NCBI RefSeq assembly: GCF_000002075.1
Contig: NW_004797880.1
Coordinates: forward strand, 372,124-436,123
Direction: 5' to 3'
DNA length: 64,000 nucleotides
DNA from: Aplysia californica
Taxonomy: Eukaryota
Part shown: positions 45,401 to 57,400 of the stretch, piece after piece
Numbering within the stretch: the first letter of the stretch is position 1
How the letters are laid out: every line of letters starts with the position of its first letter
The notes under the pieces: generated by a model
The model's database searches: none
What the model saw: only the letters and a program-made list of their open reading frames with translations
Told to the model about the DNA's origin: nothing
Made by a program: the position numbers and the translations under genes

Positions 45401-48400
45401 CAGCGTTATTCTTTGACGTGTCACTTTATTTTAAACATTTATTGTTTTAAATGAATGAACGGACAATTTTGTTTGGATGCACATCCTTCATCGTGTACAC
45501 ACATTTCTTCCTTCTCTCCATCCACAGGTGTGTAACATAGTGGGAGGCCAGCGCTGCATCAAGAAGCTGACTGACATGCAGACATCCACCATGATCAAGG
45601 TCTCCCAAATGAGTCGTCTGTCTGACCCAGCATGCATTCCTAGGCTGCATTCCCCCCCCCCCCCTTTTTTTCCCCCTTCTTTTTTATAAAAAAAGTTTCT
45701 TCAGTTTTTCTCGAGGCTTTGTCAAGATATGTGGGAACAAAAACATTTTCTACTCATATAGACCCAGAACTGTGTGTGTTTAGTCCAAAAGCCCATAGAA
45801 GATGTTTTTATGATAAACAAAACATGCTTAGTAAATTTGAAGTTTGTCCAATGAAGTTTCTTGCTGCAGCTGTTATGTGTCAAAAGAACTTTCTAACCCT
45901 TCCTTGAACCTTGGCTCAAGAAAGTGTCATTGTTATGATCTTTAAAAAAACCCAGCCTGCGTCATTGTGGGAGAAGATAAAGCCTCAGCTTCTGTCTCTA
46001 CGCTGTGTGATTTGTGGACAGAATGCACAGTATGCTTCCCGAGAAGACAGAATAATGCTTCCCGAGAAGACAGAATATTTCAAAGTCATGTTGAGTACTT
46101 GTGATGTTGGCTTTTTCTATTCTTCTTCTTCTGATTTCTGAAGCAGCTCATATAGGTATTTTTATTTGTTAAGTTTTCTGAAATTTGAAATTCTCCCCCC
46201 ATTCTCTAGTTTTCTGTGCTAAATGGTTCTGGGGAATGTTAAAATCTTTTTCTCTCCCCTCTTTGTCCATGTGGAAAAGAAACTACCAAACTCTATAATA
46301 CGCTCTCAAGTCGGTCAGTTTCTAACATCTTCTGAAAGTTACTGGTGAAATAATGAGTGTGCGTTTCTCAGATCTCACCTTGGCTATCATGACTTTTCTC
46401 TATTGTAATGGGATAAAAGTTCTCTGCTTTCTCTGTGCTGTTCACAAATCACGGCAGCAAAGATTGACTGTGAGGAAATGCCTGGCTTTGTCAGATAGCG
46501 ACTCACTTGGTTCAGTTGTCCTTTGTGTCATTCAAGAGATTTTTTTTCTTTGCAAATTTGCACTAAATACAATACTGACTCTCAGAAGTAGTATTCATGC
46601 TCGTAGATTGCCAGAGGGATTATCGAGAGGAGAAAGGTCATCATGATATCGTTTTGTTTGTCGGTGACCTGTATTCATTTCAACTTGTAGATTGTTTAGA
46701 CTCCTGAGTATATTTTAGCAGCATTGTTCGAACTATTTGTCCAACAATACGTTTTCTATGTTCTTTGTATGGACAGTGTTTAATCATTTTTAGTGGATCA
46801 TTAACTAAGAAAATTGTAAAGACAAATGAAAGAAATTTGTCTAATATTAGTGTACAAAGAAGAATTTTCCTGTCATGGACATTTAAAGCAATATCAACAT
46901 AATATACCCTGGTAAGAATGAGATGCTGGAATAATTTAGAAGTAACAATAGTTTGGATAGAAATTCTAGTGATTCTGAGAGTCAGGATTGCTGTAAGAAT
47001 ATGTAATCTGTTGGTCTGTCCTCAAGCAGGTATGTCTTTATTCTATTTTCTGTAGTGCCTCATGCTTGCGTAGAGCAGCTACAGTTCCAATGCTTGTCAT
47101 CAGATTTGGCCAATTGGCTGGTAATGGGTTAAAAAAAAAGGGTTCCTGTTAGTCTTCCAATTGTAGAACAGATTTAGTTTCCCCTTCTTCACGAAGATAG
47201 GTGCTAGTAGCCTTGCTTTTTTTTTTTTTTTTTGTTTCCGTTTGTAGGTCATCTATTGCTCAATTCTATAGTTTTCTAGGATAAAAATGCACATTTCTAA
47301 AATGTATAAATTTGTCCTTTCCTCGAACTCATGGCGTACTGTAAGAGCATATGCTGTGACTACATTTCAGACAAGATGGCATTCAATTATTTGAACATTC
47401 AGTTCTCATTTTCAGTTTTCGCTCCCATTTGTGGTTAGGTTGCTACTTAGCATAGTTTTCCCTTTCTGCACATGCAATTCCCAAACCTTTCTGTGTATAC
47501 ATTTAGTATATATACAAATATATGTAGGCCTACTTGTTGTCCATACTTGTTTGGCAGCCTAGGAATGCATTTTGTGTCCTTTAAATTGAAAAGAAAAGGG
47601 GGATATCTGTTTCCATTTGAGAAAGCCCTAGCATTACTCAGTATCATAAAATGCACATAGACTGTCAAAAAAGGAGTGCCTTGTGGAAGGAATGATAATG
47701 GAGGCCGTAAGATGTTGTTGGTTTAGTGGTAGTACTGTTAAGTTGATAGTTTGGGAGATTACAAGTTTAGTACATGAAATAAAGGCCTTAAAGTTAATAG
47801 TTCGCTTGTTTTGGGGTTTTAAAAATATTTTTATAGAGAAAACTGTGTCCAAATCTTTGGTAATGAGACTTTCAATTAAAGATTTGTACATTTTCTTTCA
47901 AATTAAATTGCCTAGCGGAGTTTAAGTCTGAGTCCCCTTTTTCTTTTCTGTGTTATTTAAAGTTTCTTATGTTAGATCAGATACTTAGATACTTGCTAGT
48001 TTGCTGTCAGTTCACAGGACTAGATTCTGTTGTTCACATAAATCCCAAGTGGTAGGTATGAATAGTTGTTTTAGTGTCATCTGAATTAATAAATAGAACA
48101 CTACAATGTTTAGCTCAGTTGGTGGTGTTATGCTAAATTATAATAATGCTGATGGCCCAGTTTTGATTCCTTTGTGGGGCATTTTTTAACTAGAGTTGTT
48201 TGGGCAGGTTTTTTTTTGGCTCTCCACCCTCTCAGCTTGGTTTTAAAGTGGACAGGCATTAAAATTAGATGCCTTGCCTTTATCGACTTTACAGCAGTGA
48301 AAGTATTGTAAAGAAGAGTAAAGAAAACTTTGCCCTTCCCATTTACAGAATATAATTGATATGGCACCAAATGGGTATATCTTTGGTCTATTCTTTAGAG

Positions 48401-51400
48401 AATGAGTTTATTTTTCATCTTTTTTCAGAGAAGGGTGGTTTTTTAAAATCTTCTATAAACCCGCCAGAAACCCTAAATCTTTGGTATTGATTTTAAATTT
48501 GTCAAATTGTGAACTTATGGTTACAATTAAGTGGAAGATTTGTGGACCATAGTTGGTTGTAAATGCTCTAAGCTGATTATGTTTACTCTTTCATTGTACA
48601 TATCATTGTTGCAACACCTACCTCTGCCCTTGTTTCCTTGAATCGTTGATATAGGTACTATTGACAGGTTAAATTTTGTTGCTTCCCATTAAATCAGCTA
48701 TTTTGTATTTCCTCCTCATCAGCTAGTCATCAGTATGTTCATGGTCTTTATCTTTTTCTGTAGTTCTTTGAGACGTATGGGAATTGGCTTCCCAAAGTGA
48801 CAAACTGTCTAAAGGAAGAGAATGTTTTAATTAAATGTTTTCGGTTCTAAAATGGCTAGAAAACAAGTGGCAGTAATTTGTGTACAGTTGAGCATGCTCT
48901 AAAAGGCCACCTGTTTAAGGCAAACTGCTGTTCAGACGCACCCCCTCGTGTACATTTTAAAAATAGAGTTACTTCTCTCCTCGACAATGGGTGGCTATCT
49001 TACAGAATTTCGACTGGGCACAAATTAAATTTGTAGTGAGTGTCAGCATGAGAGTAAACTGAGTCTTCTCCCTTTTCTTTATCTAGGCCACAGCGAGGTC
49101 AGCTCCAGACAGAGAGAAAGAAATCAACAATTTGGTAAGTTGTTGTCTTTGACACAGTTTCTTGTTACACTATTTTAGTTCTTTATTTGATGGGGTCAAA
49201 CTGATGGTTGGGTGTAAGACTGATAAACGTCAAAGTGAAAAATGAATAGTTTCTAAGTTAAATAGTTGTTATTGAAACTATGCTTTATGTCTTATTTTTC
49301 TTTTATGTGTTTGTTTTTATTCTTTTTCTTCTAAATTAAAAACAAAACAAAAACAACATTAAATGTCCCCAAAATTCTGGCGATTCATAGAAACAATATA
49401 TTTAAGATACTGAAGCCATAATAATCCTTCATAGTATTTTTCACCAATTAAGTAAAAAAAAAAGAAGAAGAATATTCCTGTGCAGTCATAAGACTTGGAT
49501 GAACAAAAGGAACAAATAAAAGGGAATATTGTTGCTTCGCTTGAAAAAAGGAATAACTGTTTGCCCTTGCTTTGCAGGGTTAGTGATAAACATTTTACTA
49601 TTATAGGAAATGAATGAACAAAGTAAAAGGAAAATGTTTGTAGATCCAGAATTTAGGGACGTTTTGCCCCTTTTATATTCTCTGTGATTACCACTTGTAT
49701 CTGATAAAGTCTTCTATGTTTTCTCAAGTACATTGCTAAATAGATACGAATGACTTGGATGTTTGATTGTTGCTGTAAAATGAACTTAACATTTCCTTTC
49801 AGATATCTGTACTGTTATTTTCATTGGAAGGCTGCATGTCATATTTCATCATATTTCAATGAATATTTGGATTTTTTATATATATGTGACATCAATTTTA
49901 TGATGCATACGGTTTATTGTGTGACAGTGTCTTTTTGAATAATCCTGTTTTTGTTTTGCTTTAGTGTGAAAATGACTGGTGGAAGTAATGGAATTTTGTT
50001 TTTCTACAGAAATGTTTATTCTATGGAAAGAGTTCTTGTGATGGTGAAAGTCTTGCAGGCTGGACTTTCTTTGAAATGGTCACAGCCAAATCAGTATACT
50101 ATTGATCATCTCAAATGTTTATAAAAATTGATTTTGAGACTTTTAGTAGAGCTGTTGCAATGTATTGGTAAACAGTGCACAAGGATTATCAGGAAATGAA
50201 GGCATTAGTGTGTAGGTTGTAAATGTGGAAATAACAAATGGTTCATTGTTTGAGTCAGAACAATGTGTTTCATGAGACTTCAAAAACAAATCCCAGTTTT
50301 ATGTTGTGAGTGTCATGGCATTGGATGATTGGTCTTCGTTTACAGCGCCAGTTTTTAAAAAAAACAATCTGTGATGTTGCAGCCTTTATTATTAAAAATT
50401 TTTCTGTGTTTTTAACTTGTTGTCCATCCATGTTAATGAAAGTAGAATCCTGACATTTGTTGGATGTGTAGTGTTTCTGCTGGCAGGTTTTTGGCAAGTG
50501 ATCGTGGTAGGTTTTGGTTTTTCAGACCTGTCAAGCACTCGTATAAAATCGTAGCTCTCTGATTTTCTTTTGCCTGTTGAAGAACCCCAGTCAGATTGAC
50601 ATAAAATCCAATTTTTTTCCCTGGAATTTAATTTCTGTGGGTGGTACACATCTTATCGTAAATGATATGAAACTACACAGGTTTTCTGCGACATATGCAC
50701 GACTTATTGTATGTCATGTGAAAATATACATTTTTATTAGTGTTTATTTACGATATACATTCATTTGCCACAGTCAGCTTATAAGGGAATCTAATATACT
50801 GGGGTTCTGCAGGCTCCGATATCCCCCCCCCCCAATTTTTAGTGAGGATTCTGAGGCAAACTCCCTGTTTTTGGTTATGGAGTGGTTGGCAGGTGTGATT
50901 CTTTACTTTTTTTGAGTAGGCATTATTTAGAAACAAGCACAGTCTGGTATCTTTGCGATGATTTAGTAGCAGTATGGCAAGATCAACATCAAATAGACAA
51001 ATTGACAGCTAGTTGCTTCAGGCAAAAGTGTGCTTAAAAATGATGTTAATACAACTCAAAAAAGCTTGAGCAGTAGATAAAGCAAACAATACAAAAGAAA
51101 TAGTGGTATGTGGGTAAAGCTAATAATACAGGGTTCTCAACCTTCTTTTGTCTTGTCACACCCTTTACCAGGCTCTTAAAAAGTAATTTCACTCAAGGCT
51201 ATGCAAGCTGTTATTTGCTGTGCTGTTACCAGCAACGGTTTATTTGATTGGACCTGAACTCATGCCCTAGCGTACTTTGCATTTCCCCTTCTGAGCATGC
51301 AATGTATATTTCAGCTTGCGGTGGAGCAAATTTAGCAGTCGAACCAAGCAAGCTAAGATACCTGTGGGTTAGGGGGCTCAAAGAGATAAGGACGACATAT

Positions 51401-54400
51401 TCATTCACATGGGCACAGGGCTAACTTTGTGTTAGCATCACTATGGATCACAGTGTGGATGACCCTATTTTGAATCCCAAAACTTTATCTCGATTGTTTA
51501 ATAGAGTTTTGAATGCCCGATACCTACTTAACTGGATCCTGTCGGAGATGGATGTTTGATTCAGAGGTCCAGGTCCTTCTGCTAAAATAATCAAGAACAT
51601 TTTTAAAAAGGGAATAGACCCATATCGATGTGTGCCATACAACGTTTTAATACTTAGTGTATTAGTTTTTTTCAAATAACAGTGGCTAATGGTATGTATT
51701 TCTTGTTAACCTGTTAAGTTTAAAAGCATTCCCTCCTGCTTCATGGTTGAGAACCCCCTCGCTTTATAGATTTAAGAGTAAGGAAAAAATGAGCGCAAGA
51801 GATTTGACGGATGCTCCTTCCCTAACAGGTGACCAAGGCCGACTTCAATAACGACATGTACCTGAAGACGTTCGGTATATGTGTCAATTACGACATGACT
51901 GAGCTCAAAGGCCGTGTTCTGCCTGCACCCAAGCTGCAGTACGGCGGCCGGGTAGGCCCAGATACTGATTCTCTTTGTCACGCCTCCCTTCTTTCTTATC
52001 TTCATCCTCCTCCTCCTTTCACGTTTTCAGTTTCATGTTGTGCCTGCTATGTGCCTCACTGGAACCTCCCATGTAAAACAACTCTGTACAGTCCTTATTT
52101 CCACCCCCCACCAACCTAGTGGAATAGTTAAGGAGAGACAGTCTTAACAACCTTTTTTTTTTGTTTTCTAGTTTTTAGCAGTTTGGGTCAAAACTTAAGC
52201 AAAACTCAGCCTTTTACTTACTATATTTTGTCATCATCTTTAAATTCCATTCTTTGAAAATTTACCTCACCGTCTCCTTTCATGGTCTAGACTTTTGTTT
52301 TCAGCACTCTACAAGTCTTGTGTGTGTGTGTGTTCATATGAACTTTGTTTTATCATGGTTTGTCTGGCTCTTATGTCCTTGATGGTGGTTGGTGGTTGCT
52401 TTGGTGCATACTGCGAGGTCTACTTTATTTCAGTGTTGCTCTCTCTCTTTTTTTTTTTTTTTTGAATGGGTCTGTTTCTGGAGAAGTGCTGACATCATTG
52501 TGCGGAGCCTATGTAAAACCAAACCACAGACTTGACAACTCTTCCTTATGTTTAGGGTTTATTTTAGTCAAACAAACAACAACAACAACAAAAAAGGGCT
52601 TTTTAAAAAAAGTGAGTGTTTTGTACTCCCTATTAGCATGTGTTGTGCATTATGTGTTTTCCTTGTGTTGTCCTTGACGACTATCTTGTTTTTTTTGTGA
52701 GAGAATTGTCCTAAACTATTTTAAAAAGGAAACTGTAGGTAGTTGGCATGCGATGGTTTGTAGTTTGTTTTTCTCCTTCTTTCCTATCAAACATCTTTTG
52801 TTCTTATGTCTACTCATCAGCATCTGTGGTGCAGTGGTTAAGCACTTGGCTGTCTGGCGCGAGAGACTCGAGTTTGATTCCTGACTGAGGAACATTTTTA
52901 TCACATGTTCTCGTCTCTCTGCTCGGATGTTGTTTCCCTCACAGTCTAAGTTGGCCCAGATGGGCAGCAGTCGAAGCCTGTGTCTTAAATGATTTTAATT
53001 GAGTCGATAGGGGTGTAAAGACACCAACATGAATTTTTAAAATATGTGAGGCATGGTGGTGAAATCAGGCACTCGTCAAAATAATGAAATCAGAGAAATC
53101 CTTCATTTCTTTGGTTTGTGGGCAATTTTTTTCTAGTTTTCTTCTTTTTTTTTTGGCTCAACACCTTTTATGTCCATTTAAAAACACATTTTAGTGTGGA
53201 TTTTACTGAAAAACATTGATCAAAAGCACCAAAAAATGTAAATTTTCAGTTTTCTAAGACTCTCAGATTATGGAAATACCAAACTTTGGCGGCCGTCTTC
53301 TCGCTAATTTTACCTCTGAAACCAGACGACCCTGACCTCCTTCAATCGCGGAAGGCAAATGAACAGTTTTCTTTTTTGTTACAATGAGAACTGTGGTATT
53401 CAAGACATTTAATCCGTAATTCCGAAATTCAGAGAGACAGAAACCTGTTTAATCATACGTAGCATTTGCGCTGCTCCAGTGCACACTCAGCAACACACCT
53501 ACACCCCTCCTAATCTTACCCTCCCCATAACATACTGCATGTGGTTTTTTTTCTTTCCTTTTCCAATTTTGAACAATGGCCACTGTGTCAGTGTCTATCA
53601 TTGCATATTCTGCCCTCACATTTAACCATCTTCCGAACAATGGGTCATTTAAATAATCACTGATTGGTGTCATCTCTCGTTATATATCTGTTTAGTTCCT
53701 TGATTTTTTAAAGTTTGGTTTAAACACCCTCTCACTAATATTCCTTTGAGTGGGCTCACATTAGCAAGTGGCTTTTGTGTTATTTTTGTGGTCTGTTTAT
53801 GAGTGTGGTTTTTCACAGGTCCGAACTAAATTGTGTTTGTACGTGTTTCATGTTTGAGAACTCCCCGGAACGTGTGTGTGTGGTTGGTAGCTCTACTTGG
53901 GTGTTCCTGTAGGAAATAACAATTCCCCAGGAACCGGTGATGTGTAGGGAAAAGCGTCCGTCGTGTGCTTTACTTATTGGCCAAGGAAACAATGTGCACC
54001 GTTGCAAGCTGTGTGAGAGAATTGATCTTGCTCACCAACTGTTTGACAGTTTTCAGATCTTGCCAAGAACCTGCCTTCTTTCAGATTCTGACCTTTTGTC
54101 TGTTTTTGGACCCAGCAGCTTTCAAGCGCGAAAATTTCTCATCACAAAGTGTTTTTTTTTCTCCAGAGCTGCGGGCAACACTGTTCACTTGGTTGTCCCG
54201 GAAATATGCACAGGTTTTTGTGCAGTCGGCAGAATATCTCAGGGGCTCATGTCTTCTCACTCATCTCATTCATTTTTTTTTCCACCACGGTCATGTGCCT
54301 GCTTCATGGCTGGCCGGTCCTTCTCTTTTTCTTTTGCCCCCCAAATTAGATCCGTAAGGCCAACTTCAATGCTGACCCCTATCTCCAAACCTTCGGCATC

Positions 54401-57400
54401 AGTATCAACACACAAATGATGGATGTTCAGGGTCGTGTGTTAACGGCTCCTAAGTTGCAATACGGTGGACGGGTAAGACTAGACTCCCAGAGATAAATGG
54501 GTTTTTTCTTCATCCTTTTTTCTGTTATAAAAAAATTATTTGCACTCTTTCCCTTGTAGGGAGGTGACAGTAAGACTCCACAAAGTAAATCGTAGCTTCG
54601 TTTCCTTTCTTTAAAAAAAAAATTTTTTTCTCTCTTTTTTTTGGTCTGTTTATAACACTAAGACATGTTTCTGTCAGTCATCAATGCAAACTACCTCCTG
54701 TATAAAGTAAAGAGATCTGTTTCCCGTTTGAAAATTCCTTTCCCAAAGTGTCATGTCAGATATGATGTATCATGCACATTTGCATCACTGTCACCGTTCA
54801 GATATATATGCACCTCTTTTAGTGATTTTAAAACTTAGATAAAAACTGATTCAATTTCAATGTTTAGAGTGAACGTTTCCCAACTTTTGTAGAGCTATGG
54901 AAGTGAAAGTGAATTGTGATACATCTTTCAGATTAACACAGCTAATGCAACCCCATTGTAAGAGCTTGTCTGAAGTAGAGTAAAGTGAAGTGGTTGATAC
55001 AGTTTCTACTGTGCGCTGTTCCCACTCCATGGAAAAAAAAGAAAAGAAAGAAAGTTAGAAAGTTGCAGTCTAGATGTATAATATTGATTCGAAGGTTCCT
55101 ATTTAGTATCAAATGTTGGGAATGCATGCAGCTTGCTGTATGGATTTGGATGAGATTGGGTCTGTCTTTTGAGATACGAAGGTGATTTGATAATGAGGTG
55201 TACACATGATAGATCTAAAAAAAGGTGTTATTTTGCCATGATTCAGTGTGATAGAAAGATGGTAGAAGGGTATTTTGTTTCACTCTTTGAAATTGCATGT
55301 CAGTATGATGTGGCCAAAGAAATAAAAGTGGGGGGAGGGGGGGAGGAATAGAGATGTTGTGGAGGATATATTTTCAAATTGAAAATGGTGAAAAATTACA
55401 TGTTTTAAAATGACACCTTTTCTGCTCTTACCTATTCTCCTTGTACTAAATGTTGTTGTTAATATTCTGCAAATGATAAAGCTTATGGCTTGTATGGTTT
55501 GTCTGTTATTGTGACCCATCCGTTACAGTTTTAGGAAACATGAACAAAAAAATATCTGCCATGTGGCACAAAAAATAACGTAATTTTTAAATTTAAAAAA
55601 TCCCAAAAACCTTAATGTAGAAGGTAGGGTCAAATAAAAACATTTAATTTTTCTTGTGACTACGATGGTATAGATTTTAGTTTTGCAGAATCTGTGGAGT
55701 GATATTGTCAGAGTGATAGTTTTGGGGCAGAGCGTGAGTCGTTTTGTTTGTGCTCTCAGCCACGCATTTCAGGGAATGACAGGTTACCCTAAGAGCATTC
55801 ACGCACGGGAGCTCACACACATGCACGTAGGTGCGCATTTACACACACACACAAACACACGCTCGCGTGTGTGCCAGTGAACTTTAAAGTCGTAAGTTAT
55901 TTAATGTTTGTATTACTGTCTCTTTTTAAATAAAAAAGTGAGTTTAACTGAGCATTTTCTTGCCCCTTTCTGACAGTGAGGCATTTTGCCCTGTATCGTG
56001 TCTTCCCCTCTGTGTTATTGCAAAGTTTTTGTACATTGAATTGAATTTCTTGAATTATTTTTTGCTTACGGTTGAATTTATGTGAAATGTTTAAAAAATT
56101 AAGTACAACAGTTACAGTTTATTTATGTTTGTAAAGCTGGTAACAGTAAGTGACCAATATATTATGTATTTAAACAAAAAATATATTTTTGTAAAGTTGT
56201 GAAAAAAAAGCAGTTTTCTTTTTAAGTAAAATGAAATTCTTGTTCTGACATGGATAGTGTAAAGTTCTTTTGCTGGGTTTAGCTTAAATACATACTTAGA
56301 AGCAAAGTTATATTGAAATGTTAATTTTTTTAAGAAAAAAGATTTCTATATCTGTAACTCTCTGGTAACTGTAACGCCCCTAATCTTCAACTCTTGTACG
56401 ACCTATTTACGTTGCAAATGCTGTAAAACTCTTACTAAAATTATATAATTTTAAAAAAATACTATGTTTTTGCTTGTCGTGCAGACCAAAGCCCAAGCCA
56501 TTCCCAACCAAGGTGTGTGGGATATGAGAGGCAAACAGTTCTACCAGGGAATCGAGATCCGGGTGTGGGCCATCGCCTGCTTCGCCCCGCAGAGAACTGT
56601 CAGGGAAGATGCCTTGAGGTATGTGCTTTTACTTCTTCTTTTTACCCTTCTCCCACCGAGACCTGACATTGACAACACACTCTATGGAACATTACAGCAA
56701 CTGCTGTAAACCTGCACGTATCACTACATGGCATTGGACCGAAGGGCGAGAGCCCAGCTGTTGCTAGATCGATAACAGCAACACCAACAACTTCTTCTTT
56801 TTCTCAATAATACTGATTACATTTGCAAAGCGCATGTTCACACCCTAAAGCATGCTGTTCTGTAGAGATGAATGATCCAGACAACAGTCATGAAGTTTGA
56901 TCATCGATAAGATAGATCTGGTGGGATTTCGTATTGAATTTATCTTTCTCTGTAAATGAGGAAGGGATGCGACACGAGCTGAACTGGCGAGCTATATTAT
57001 TAAGTGATAAGATGGAATCCACAAGGAAATAGAAAGAATGGAAGTCCGGAATGTACTTGTAGGAAGGACTTAGATTCCGACCTGAAGAAGATGGAATAAT
57101 ACAGCTGGACAAAGATAGAGACTGTAGCCCTGGACAGAAGTCGGAGAGCTCCTGTTGTTGGCTTATACTCTCGATATGACGTAATGATGATGATGGTGTC
57201 AACACGGTAGTGTTTTTGTAAAGCTAAAAATTAAGTGAAAAAAAAAAAGGACACGTACACCCACCCACCCCCGCCCCCTTCAAAACTCCCTTATTTTATT
57301 CTACTCTGTTTGCCATTTAAAAATAACCGGCTTTCTGCTCTGAGGGTGATCATAGGGTGCCACTGGTAAGAACAACTTCTATTCTTTTCCCTTTTTTAAA

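Follow-up and report, generated by a model that had tools for sequence, protein, structure and literature searches.

A tandemly duplicated exon provides two versions of one L2 segment in a mollusc miRNA-class Argonaute gene

In a 64,000-nucleotide (nt) window of the Aplysia californica genome (contig NW_004797880.1, positions 372,124 to 436,123), a gene for an Argonaute of the microRNA (miRNA) class carries two neighboring copies of one exon, here termed exon a (upstream) and exon b (downstream), each encoding the L2 linker segment that corresponds to residues 383-423 of human AGO2. We proposed that the two copies form an ancient either/or exon, which supplies two versions of L2 and would retune a cofactor-binding surface; we place the probability of this reading at about 0.8. 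A tandem exon duplication would thus have given the mollusc miRNA Argonaute two substitutable versions of the segment, of which a mature messenger RNA (mRNA) would normally carry one.

Both exons are 123 nt long, preceded by AG, followed by GT, in phase 0-0, and open throughout. In the window gene they share 26 of 41 residues and 77 of 123 nt, and 15 of the 26 shared codons had changed silently; thus, the coordinates, length, and identity counts of an earlier sequence-only reading of this window were all reproduced. By the features that can be tested in sequence (equal length, equal phase, and intact splice sites), the pair is a tandem duplicated exon substitution. Human AGO2 383-423 is the single ungapped counterpart of each exon, a longer alignment stretch of the isoform with human AGO2 holds a constant offset of 67 residues, and every solved structure matched has the L2 segment once, without gaps. 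From the ungapped match we soundly infer that only one copy would fit the Argonaute fold. Structure predictions were of low quality, with a predicted local distance difference test score (pLDDT) of 33 for isoform X2 alone and of 45 for the double-exon form of Physella (50 rows), whose L2 scored below 50. The earlier assignment of the segment to residues ~383-423 stood, and its placement just after helix 7 did not, as a 16-residue exon (human 367-382) intervenes if helix 7 lies where we presume it to lie in human AGO2. The exons had been labeled 14a and 14b; counted on the RefSeq model, which has 14 coding exons ahead of them, they are coding exons 15a and 15b.

An echo of the assembly, which the earlier reading had already rejected, was ruled out by the 63% nucleotide identity, the saturation of the synonymous sites, and the occurrence of the pair in other species. 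As had also been claimed, the introns flanking the two exons could not be aligned with each other, nor with those of a second Aplysia gene described below, apart from repeats and splice signals. An identical 12-mer lies upstream of exon a (51735-51746) and of exon b (54298-54309); matches of equal length were seen in 4 of ~100 random pairs, and this 12-mer was not found in other species. No third copy of the L2 exon was present in the 64-kb window, and no other exon of the window Argonaute gene was doubled.

The use of the two exons was addressed through public annotation and RNA data. At the window locus, RefSeq isoforms carry exon a or exon b, each joined to the two constitutive neighbors, and none carries both. 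The 11 genes compared have 85 annotated models, of which 75 contain a single copy, 10 contain both, and none skips both; the a-to-b join is absent from 74 models of nine other genes, including those of Biomphalaria and Bradybaena. In addition, a Nucella cDNA contains exon a only, and a protein from a transcript-sized contig contains exon b only. The claim that one gene yields two single-exon isoforms is thus supported by the annotation of this locus and of eight other genes. Two observations weigh against strict exclusion. First, of the ten double-exon models, eight are among the nine RefSeq isoforms listed for Physella and two are predictions for Batillaria. Second, the a+b form stays in frame, both exons being phase 0-0. 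When a contig set and three polyA single-end runs of 2026 were aligned to 51700-56700, the three runs gave zero depth on exon a or b and hence no junction reads. The same data showed almost no depth on the next exon, with reads piled at intronic repeats and A-rich places; the runs may be 3'-tag libraries or may have lost reads of conserved sequence to filtering, and the lack of depth is no evidence that the exons are silent. Because the Physella isoforms and Batillaria predictions carry both exons, the exclusion may leak, and the Physella isoforms may be either a real leak or an annotation choice. Of the mutual exclusivity first proposed, either/or use at the window locus is therefore well supported by annotation, and strict exclusivity is a possibility.

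The double-exon models could also be read as evidence that the copies are independent or loosely coupled cassettes, such that a, b, and a+b mRNAs are all made. The a+b protein, with its L2 repeat of 41 residues, would then be a genuine third product that is inactive or has a regulatory role. We consider this improbable. It would accommodate the eight of nine Physella isoforms, the ability of phase 0-0 exons to let an a+b mRNA avoid nonsense-mediated decay, the a-b intron of 0.5-2.4 kb, which is beyond steric exclusion, and the failure to find a conserved docking-selector element. It conflicts with the 74 models of nine other genes that lack the join and with the L2 segment of the solved structures, which is single and without gaps, and the Batillaria a+b models are unreviewed predictions.

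The ordered pair, a then b, was found in the genomic DNA of the nudibranch Okenia hiroi (the sequencing run is named in PMC7995900), Lymnaea, Littorina, the neomphalid Gigantopelta, and the bivalve Potamilus. Both exon types also occur in the isoform sets of Biomphalaria, Physella, Bradybaena, Babylonia, Pomacea, and Batillaria, and pulmonates and caenogastropods are among the groups with the pair. Across 13 mollusc genes, identity was 78% for a-a, 87% for b-b, and 63% for a-b comparisons. Between Aplysia and Lymnaea, the nonsynonymous and synonymous substitution rates (dN and dS) were 0.011 and 0.62 for exon a and 0.044 and 0.88 for exon b; because dN is far below dS for both, both copies are under purifying selection. 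Because an intact, ordered pair is present in gastropods and in a bivalve, the comparison indicates that the pair predates the gastropod-bivalve split, which was Cambrian. These results agreed with the view of an old duplication kept by purifying selection.

Beyond molluscs, the nemertean Lineus has two copies in each of its two genes, as do two annelid-like metagenome contigs. Only one exon was present in the other annelid, nemertean, and hemichordate genes, namely those of Lamellibrachia, Tubulanus, Glandiceps, and many contigs that we take to be from gutless oligochaetes. The same phase 0-0 exon might therefore have been duplicated separately in the mollusc, nemertean, and annelid-like lineages rather than once in a lophotrochozoan ancestor, which we regard as rather unlikely. 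The tree of the 41 alignment columns does not unite all b exons, neither history was rejected by the approximately unbiased (AU) test (p-AU 0.18 for one b clade and 0.07 for a Lineus-only duplication), and the single exon of Tubulanus, Lamellibrachia, and the oligochaete-type genes would fit separate gains. Against this, the rare donor GTAGGC follows all four non-mollusc upstream copies and none of seven single-exon genes that have this intron; this non-coding mark favors a single origin.

The second Aplysia Argonaute gene lies on another contig. Its b exon encodes a protein segment identical to that of the window gene (dN 0), and its a exon is 66% identical and fast-evolving (dN 0.215). The same ordered pair is present in both Aplysia genes; therefore, the exon duplication is older than the gene duplication. 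Exon b might instead be the sole functional copy in Aplysia, with exon a no more than a relic in decay or an echo of annotation. Consistent with such decay, exon a of the second gene evolves faster than exon b and the window exon a had no read support here, in runs without depth on either exon. We nevertheless consider it highly improbable: the window exon a differs by one residue from those of Lymnaea and Physella at a dS of 0.62, is present in RefSeq X2 and X5, and has a conserved donor. In the assembly of the second gene, two MID-region exons are missing near N gaps (the RefSeq model has 816 aa). A 5.3-kb repeat, 99.1% identical (G000:C570 479280-484580 and 489100-494398), lies near a 100-N gap and carries three exons; its differences are clustered in two patches, and it is probably a mis-assembled allele. 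The extra copy of exon a in this repeat, whose position breaks the exon order and whose acceptor is disrupted, was rejected as a probable mis-assembly. At 460092-460392 of the same contig, the end of the penultimate exon is repeated twice more as short, degenerate copies.

The host gene was delimited by mapping the RefSeq proteins of Aplysia californica named "protein argonaute-2" onto the window, which gave 22 coding exons flanked by canonical splice sites; searches with the gene were made exon by exon, and full-length analyses were based on database proteins. The Pfam N, L1, PAZ, L2, MID, and PIWI domains all scored above cut-off in both isoforms, and the nearest solved relatives are AGO1-4, not PIWI. 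The catalytic tetrad D-E-D-H is intact in isoform X2 (D664, E704, D736, and H874), each residue at +67 relative to human AGO2, whose tetrad we take to be D597, E637, D669, and H807. By these sequence features, the gene is an AGO-clade, miRNA-class Argonaute, and family membership suggests that its product would load miRNAs in vivo. Ahead of the upstream constitutive exon, the donor (window 45600-45605) is non-consensus, GTCTCC, with GTCTCT in Littorina and GTTTCT in Potamilus, and Glandiceps isoforms carry a 3-residue extension at this junction.

We then considered what the swap may change. Six columns have no residue common to mollusc a and b exons: 384, 387, 390, 401, 406, and 414 in human numbering. 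At the position of S387, the mollusc a exons (13 of 13) have Asp, the mollusc b exons (13 of 13) have Asn, and none has serine; Arg384 is present in every mollusc b exon and in no a exon. Positions 401, 406, and 414 differ as V/I, T versus M or V, and P versus T/S/N/A, and Y393 and the C-terminal motif are common to both. Akt3 phosphorylates S387 of human AGO2; binding to LIMD1, TNRC6A, and DDX6 is restored by S387E and reduced by S387A, and E390 of AGO3 is a built-in acidic phospho-mimic (PMC5507773). In the simplest functional reading, exon a would set an acidic, phospho-mimic residue at 387 and exon b a neutral Asn together with Arg384, such that exon choice would set the binding of LIM-domain adaptors and GW182/TNRC6, which in mammals is set by Akt3 or by the choice of paralog (AGO3 E390). 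That the exposed patch around S387 is the point of the swap is a tentative suggestion, and three facts tell against it: Asp at 387 also occurs in arthropod and many annelid single exons and may be simply ancestral, the non-mollusc b exons carry E, Q, or D at this position, and control of the LIMD1 type was shown in human cells only.

An either/or exon would be equally real if the swap tuned the core of the protein instead, through the packing of L2 on L1, MID, and PIWI, with effects on guide loading, target release, or stability. We regard this as a serious possibility, if short of even odds, and tuning through 401, 406, and 414 seems about as likely as a switch of the S387 type. Four of the six fixed differences (390, 401, 406, and 414) lie away from 387, and the segment comes after helix 7 and ahead of MID; on the other side, the cleanest invariant switch, with a change of charge, is 387 together with 384, and Y393 and the C-terminal motif are the same in both exons.

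How the splice choice might be made was examined from the conserved features around the pair. The exon a donor GTAGGC never occurs at downstream-copy donors or in single-exon genes, and together with the pyrimidine-rich tract behind it, its conservation points to control of exon a by a protein factor. Exon a would thus be the regulated copy, with a fixed non-consensus donor, a pyrimidine tract, and, in Aplysia, a duplex that could mask its acceptor; the more constrained copy would be exon b. Steric exclusion of the tropomyosin type, in which the branch point lies within ~50 nt of the first donor, was excluded by the length of the a-b intron (479-2427 nt across genes) and by AG-free zones of ordinary size (27-137 nt). 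RNA pairing controls exon clusters elsewhere, through docking-selector elements in Dscam and through bidirectional pairing; across ten genes, no shared word or conserved duplex of the docking-selector type was found, and X:Y of Aplysia alone stood out. The candidate duplex of Aplysia, X:Y, had a predicted energy of -36.8 kcal/mol, which beat 60 of 60 shuffles, and the second Aplysia gene has a weaker counterpart with equal spacing. Several results speak against these proposals for the splice choice: the U1 pairing energies of the two donors are nearly equal, the z-score of X:Y was matched by 4 of 16 constitutive control acceptors, and X:Y was not found in other molluscs beyond the two Aplysia genes. 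Thus, we treat X:Y as a species-level candidate, which resembles Dscam-type pairing in that it could hide the exon a acceptor and differs from it in having no cross-species docking or selector sequence. A second duplex, Z:W, was marginal, and its higher score in one test was owed to a G run. The count of YCAY words ahead of exon b was not conserved in other species, and base pairing between the a donor and the region of the b acceptor ranked first in Aplysia and Okenia only.

The type of splicing event is itself well known. The Argonaute pair resembles the tandem duplicated exon substitutions (PMC9741552) and the myosin heavy chain clusters (PMC3912159) in that its exons are of the same length and phase, tandem, swapped, ancient, and conserved; it differs from the catalogued systems in that it may leak to double inclusion, and the human and fly catalogue makes no mention of Argonaute (PMC9741552). 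The human S387/AGO3 E390 system (PMC5507773) involves the same L2 segment, the same aligned position, and an acidic versus neutral state; the mollusc state, a likeness seen in alignment, would be set by exon choice within a single gene, whose product offers no serine for phosphorylation. Shrimp Ago1A/B/C are likewise isoforms of one invertebrate miRNA-class gene with different roles, and they differ by their N-terminal ends and a 27-residue PIWI insertion, with no homologous L2 exon swap (PMC3510085). The window gene belongs to the same protein family as the lophotrochozoan miAGO clade; in molluscs, the AGO genes number one or two, and none is of the small interfering RNA (siRNA) type (PMC11114477, PMC12479628). 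Surveys of RNA interference (RNAi) in molluscs and lophotrochozoans are silent on AGO exons or splicing, and one of them collapsed isoforms, keeping the longest per gene (PMC11114477, PMC12479628, PMC4793324). In the literature searched, which left most subscription papers outside its scope, no description of an Argonaute L2 exon swap was found, in agreement with the earlier impression; the swap is thus apparently undescribed, yet already present in automatic annotation (RefSeq). New here are the fixed Asp/Asn difference at the S387 position and the GTAGGC donor of exon a. Argonaute diversity is usually counted in genes; a swap kept since the gastropod-bivalve split would imply that two RNA-induced silencing complex (RISC) cores have long been needed. 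The swap coincides with the regulatory patch that is best known in human AGO2, offering a natural D/N experiment in a classic neuron model, and is relevant to RNAi design in molluscs.

Table 1. Positions of the features discussed (window coordinates unless another sequence is named)
Feature	Location	Strand	Remarks
L2 exon a (upstream copy)	51829-51951	+	41 codons = human AGO2 383-423; Asp at S387 position; RefSeq X2, X5
L2 exon b (downstream copy)	54350-54472	+	41 codons; Arg384, Asn at S387 position; RefSeq X1, X3, X4, X6, X7
Upstream constitutive exon	49087-49134	+	16 codons, phase 0 donor
Downstream constitutive exon	56485-56618	+	End of L2, start of MID
Host gene, miRNA-class Argonaute	24434-62530 (end approximate)	+	22 coding exons in window; last exon ~5.8 kb past window end
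Exon a donor GTAGGC	51952-51957	+	In 10/11 genes with the pair (GTTGGC in Gigantopelta) and 1/140 other donors; counts span related genes and express conservation, not eleven independent draws
Pyrimidine-rich tract after exon a donor	51961-52021	+	82% C/T; richer than behind b in 9/10 genes
Duplex arm X (candidate)	51790-51828	+	Would cover pyrimidine tract and acceptor of exon a
Duplex arm Y (candidate)	53940-53971	+	Partner of X, ~400 nt upstream of exon b
AG-free zone before exon b acceptor	54243-54349	+	105 nt, 9 YCAY words
Second Aplysia Argonaute gene	G000:C570 ~460000-502000 (L006-L010)	minus	Same ordered L2 pair, other contig
Physella acuta double-exon RefSeq isoforms	Proteins P0247, P0264-P0267, P0269-P0271		Both L2 exons in tandem
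PIWI exon pair, Littorina	L093:82181-82276 and 83147-83239		
PIWI exon pair, Gigantopelta	L100:47852-47947 and 48905-48997		
PIWI exon pair, Potamilus	L094:81606-81698 and 86341-86427		

Further Argonaute exons are doubled in relatives of Aplysia. Littorina, Babylonia, Pomacea, Nucella, Gigantopelta, Potamilus, and one further contig have two copies of the PIWI exon that carries the first catalytic Asp, and in caenogastropods and Gigantopelta, Ser replaces Asp in the upstream copy. In Littorina, Babylonia, and Pomacea, RefSeq isoforms contain one or other of the PIWI copies, which suggests that the Ser-copy isoform is a slicer-dead form produced by splicing; both Aplysia genes and Lymnaea have the Asp copy only. 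Molluscs might then obtain functionally distinct Argonautes through exon swaps, in which the L2 pair fixes the on/off state of the S387 cofactor switch and the PIWI pair (in caenogastropods and neomphalids) the choice of Asp or Ser. We consider so broad a scheme unlikely; were it true, one gene would yield slicer and non-slicer, mimic and non-mimic RISC, for which vertebrates use four paralogs and a kinase.

Other duplications were scattered: N-domain exons are doubled in Lineus gene B (copies 14 nt apart) and in L049, the exon after L2 is doubled in L014, and alternative last exons occur in Lineus B (L096, a minus strand gene), Gigantopelta (L100), and L049. The Argonaute introns of Littorina (L093:29225-31425 and 76443-77572) contain tandem arrays of 56-nt and 122-nt units in dozens of near-identical copies, each unit consisting of an exon end plus its donor.

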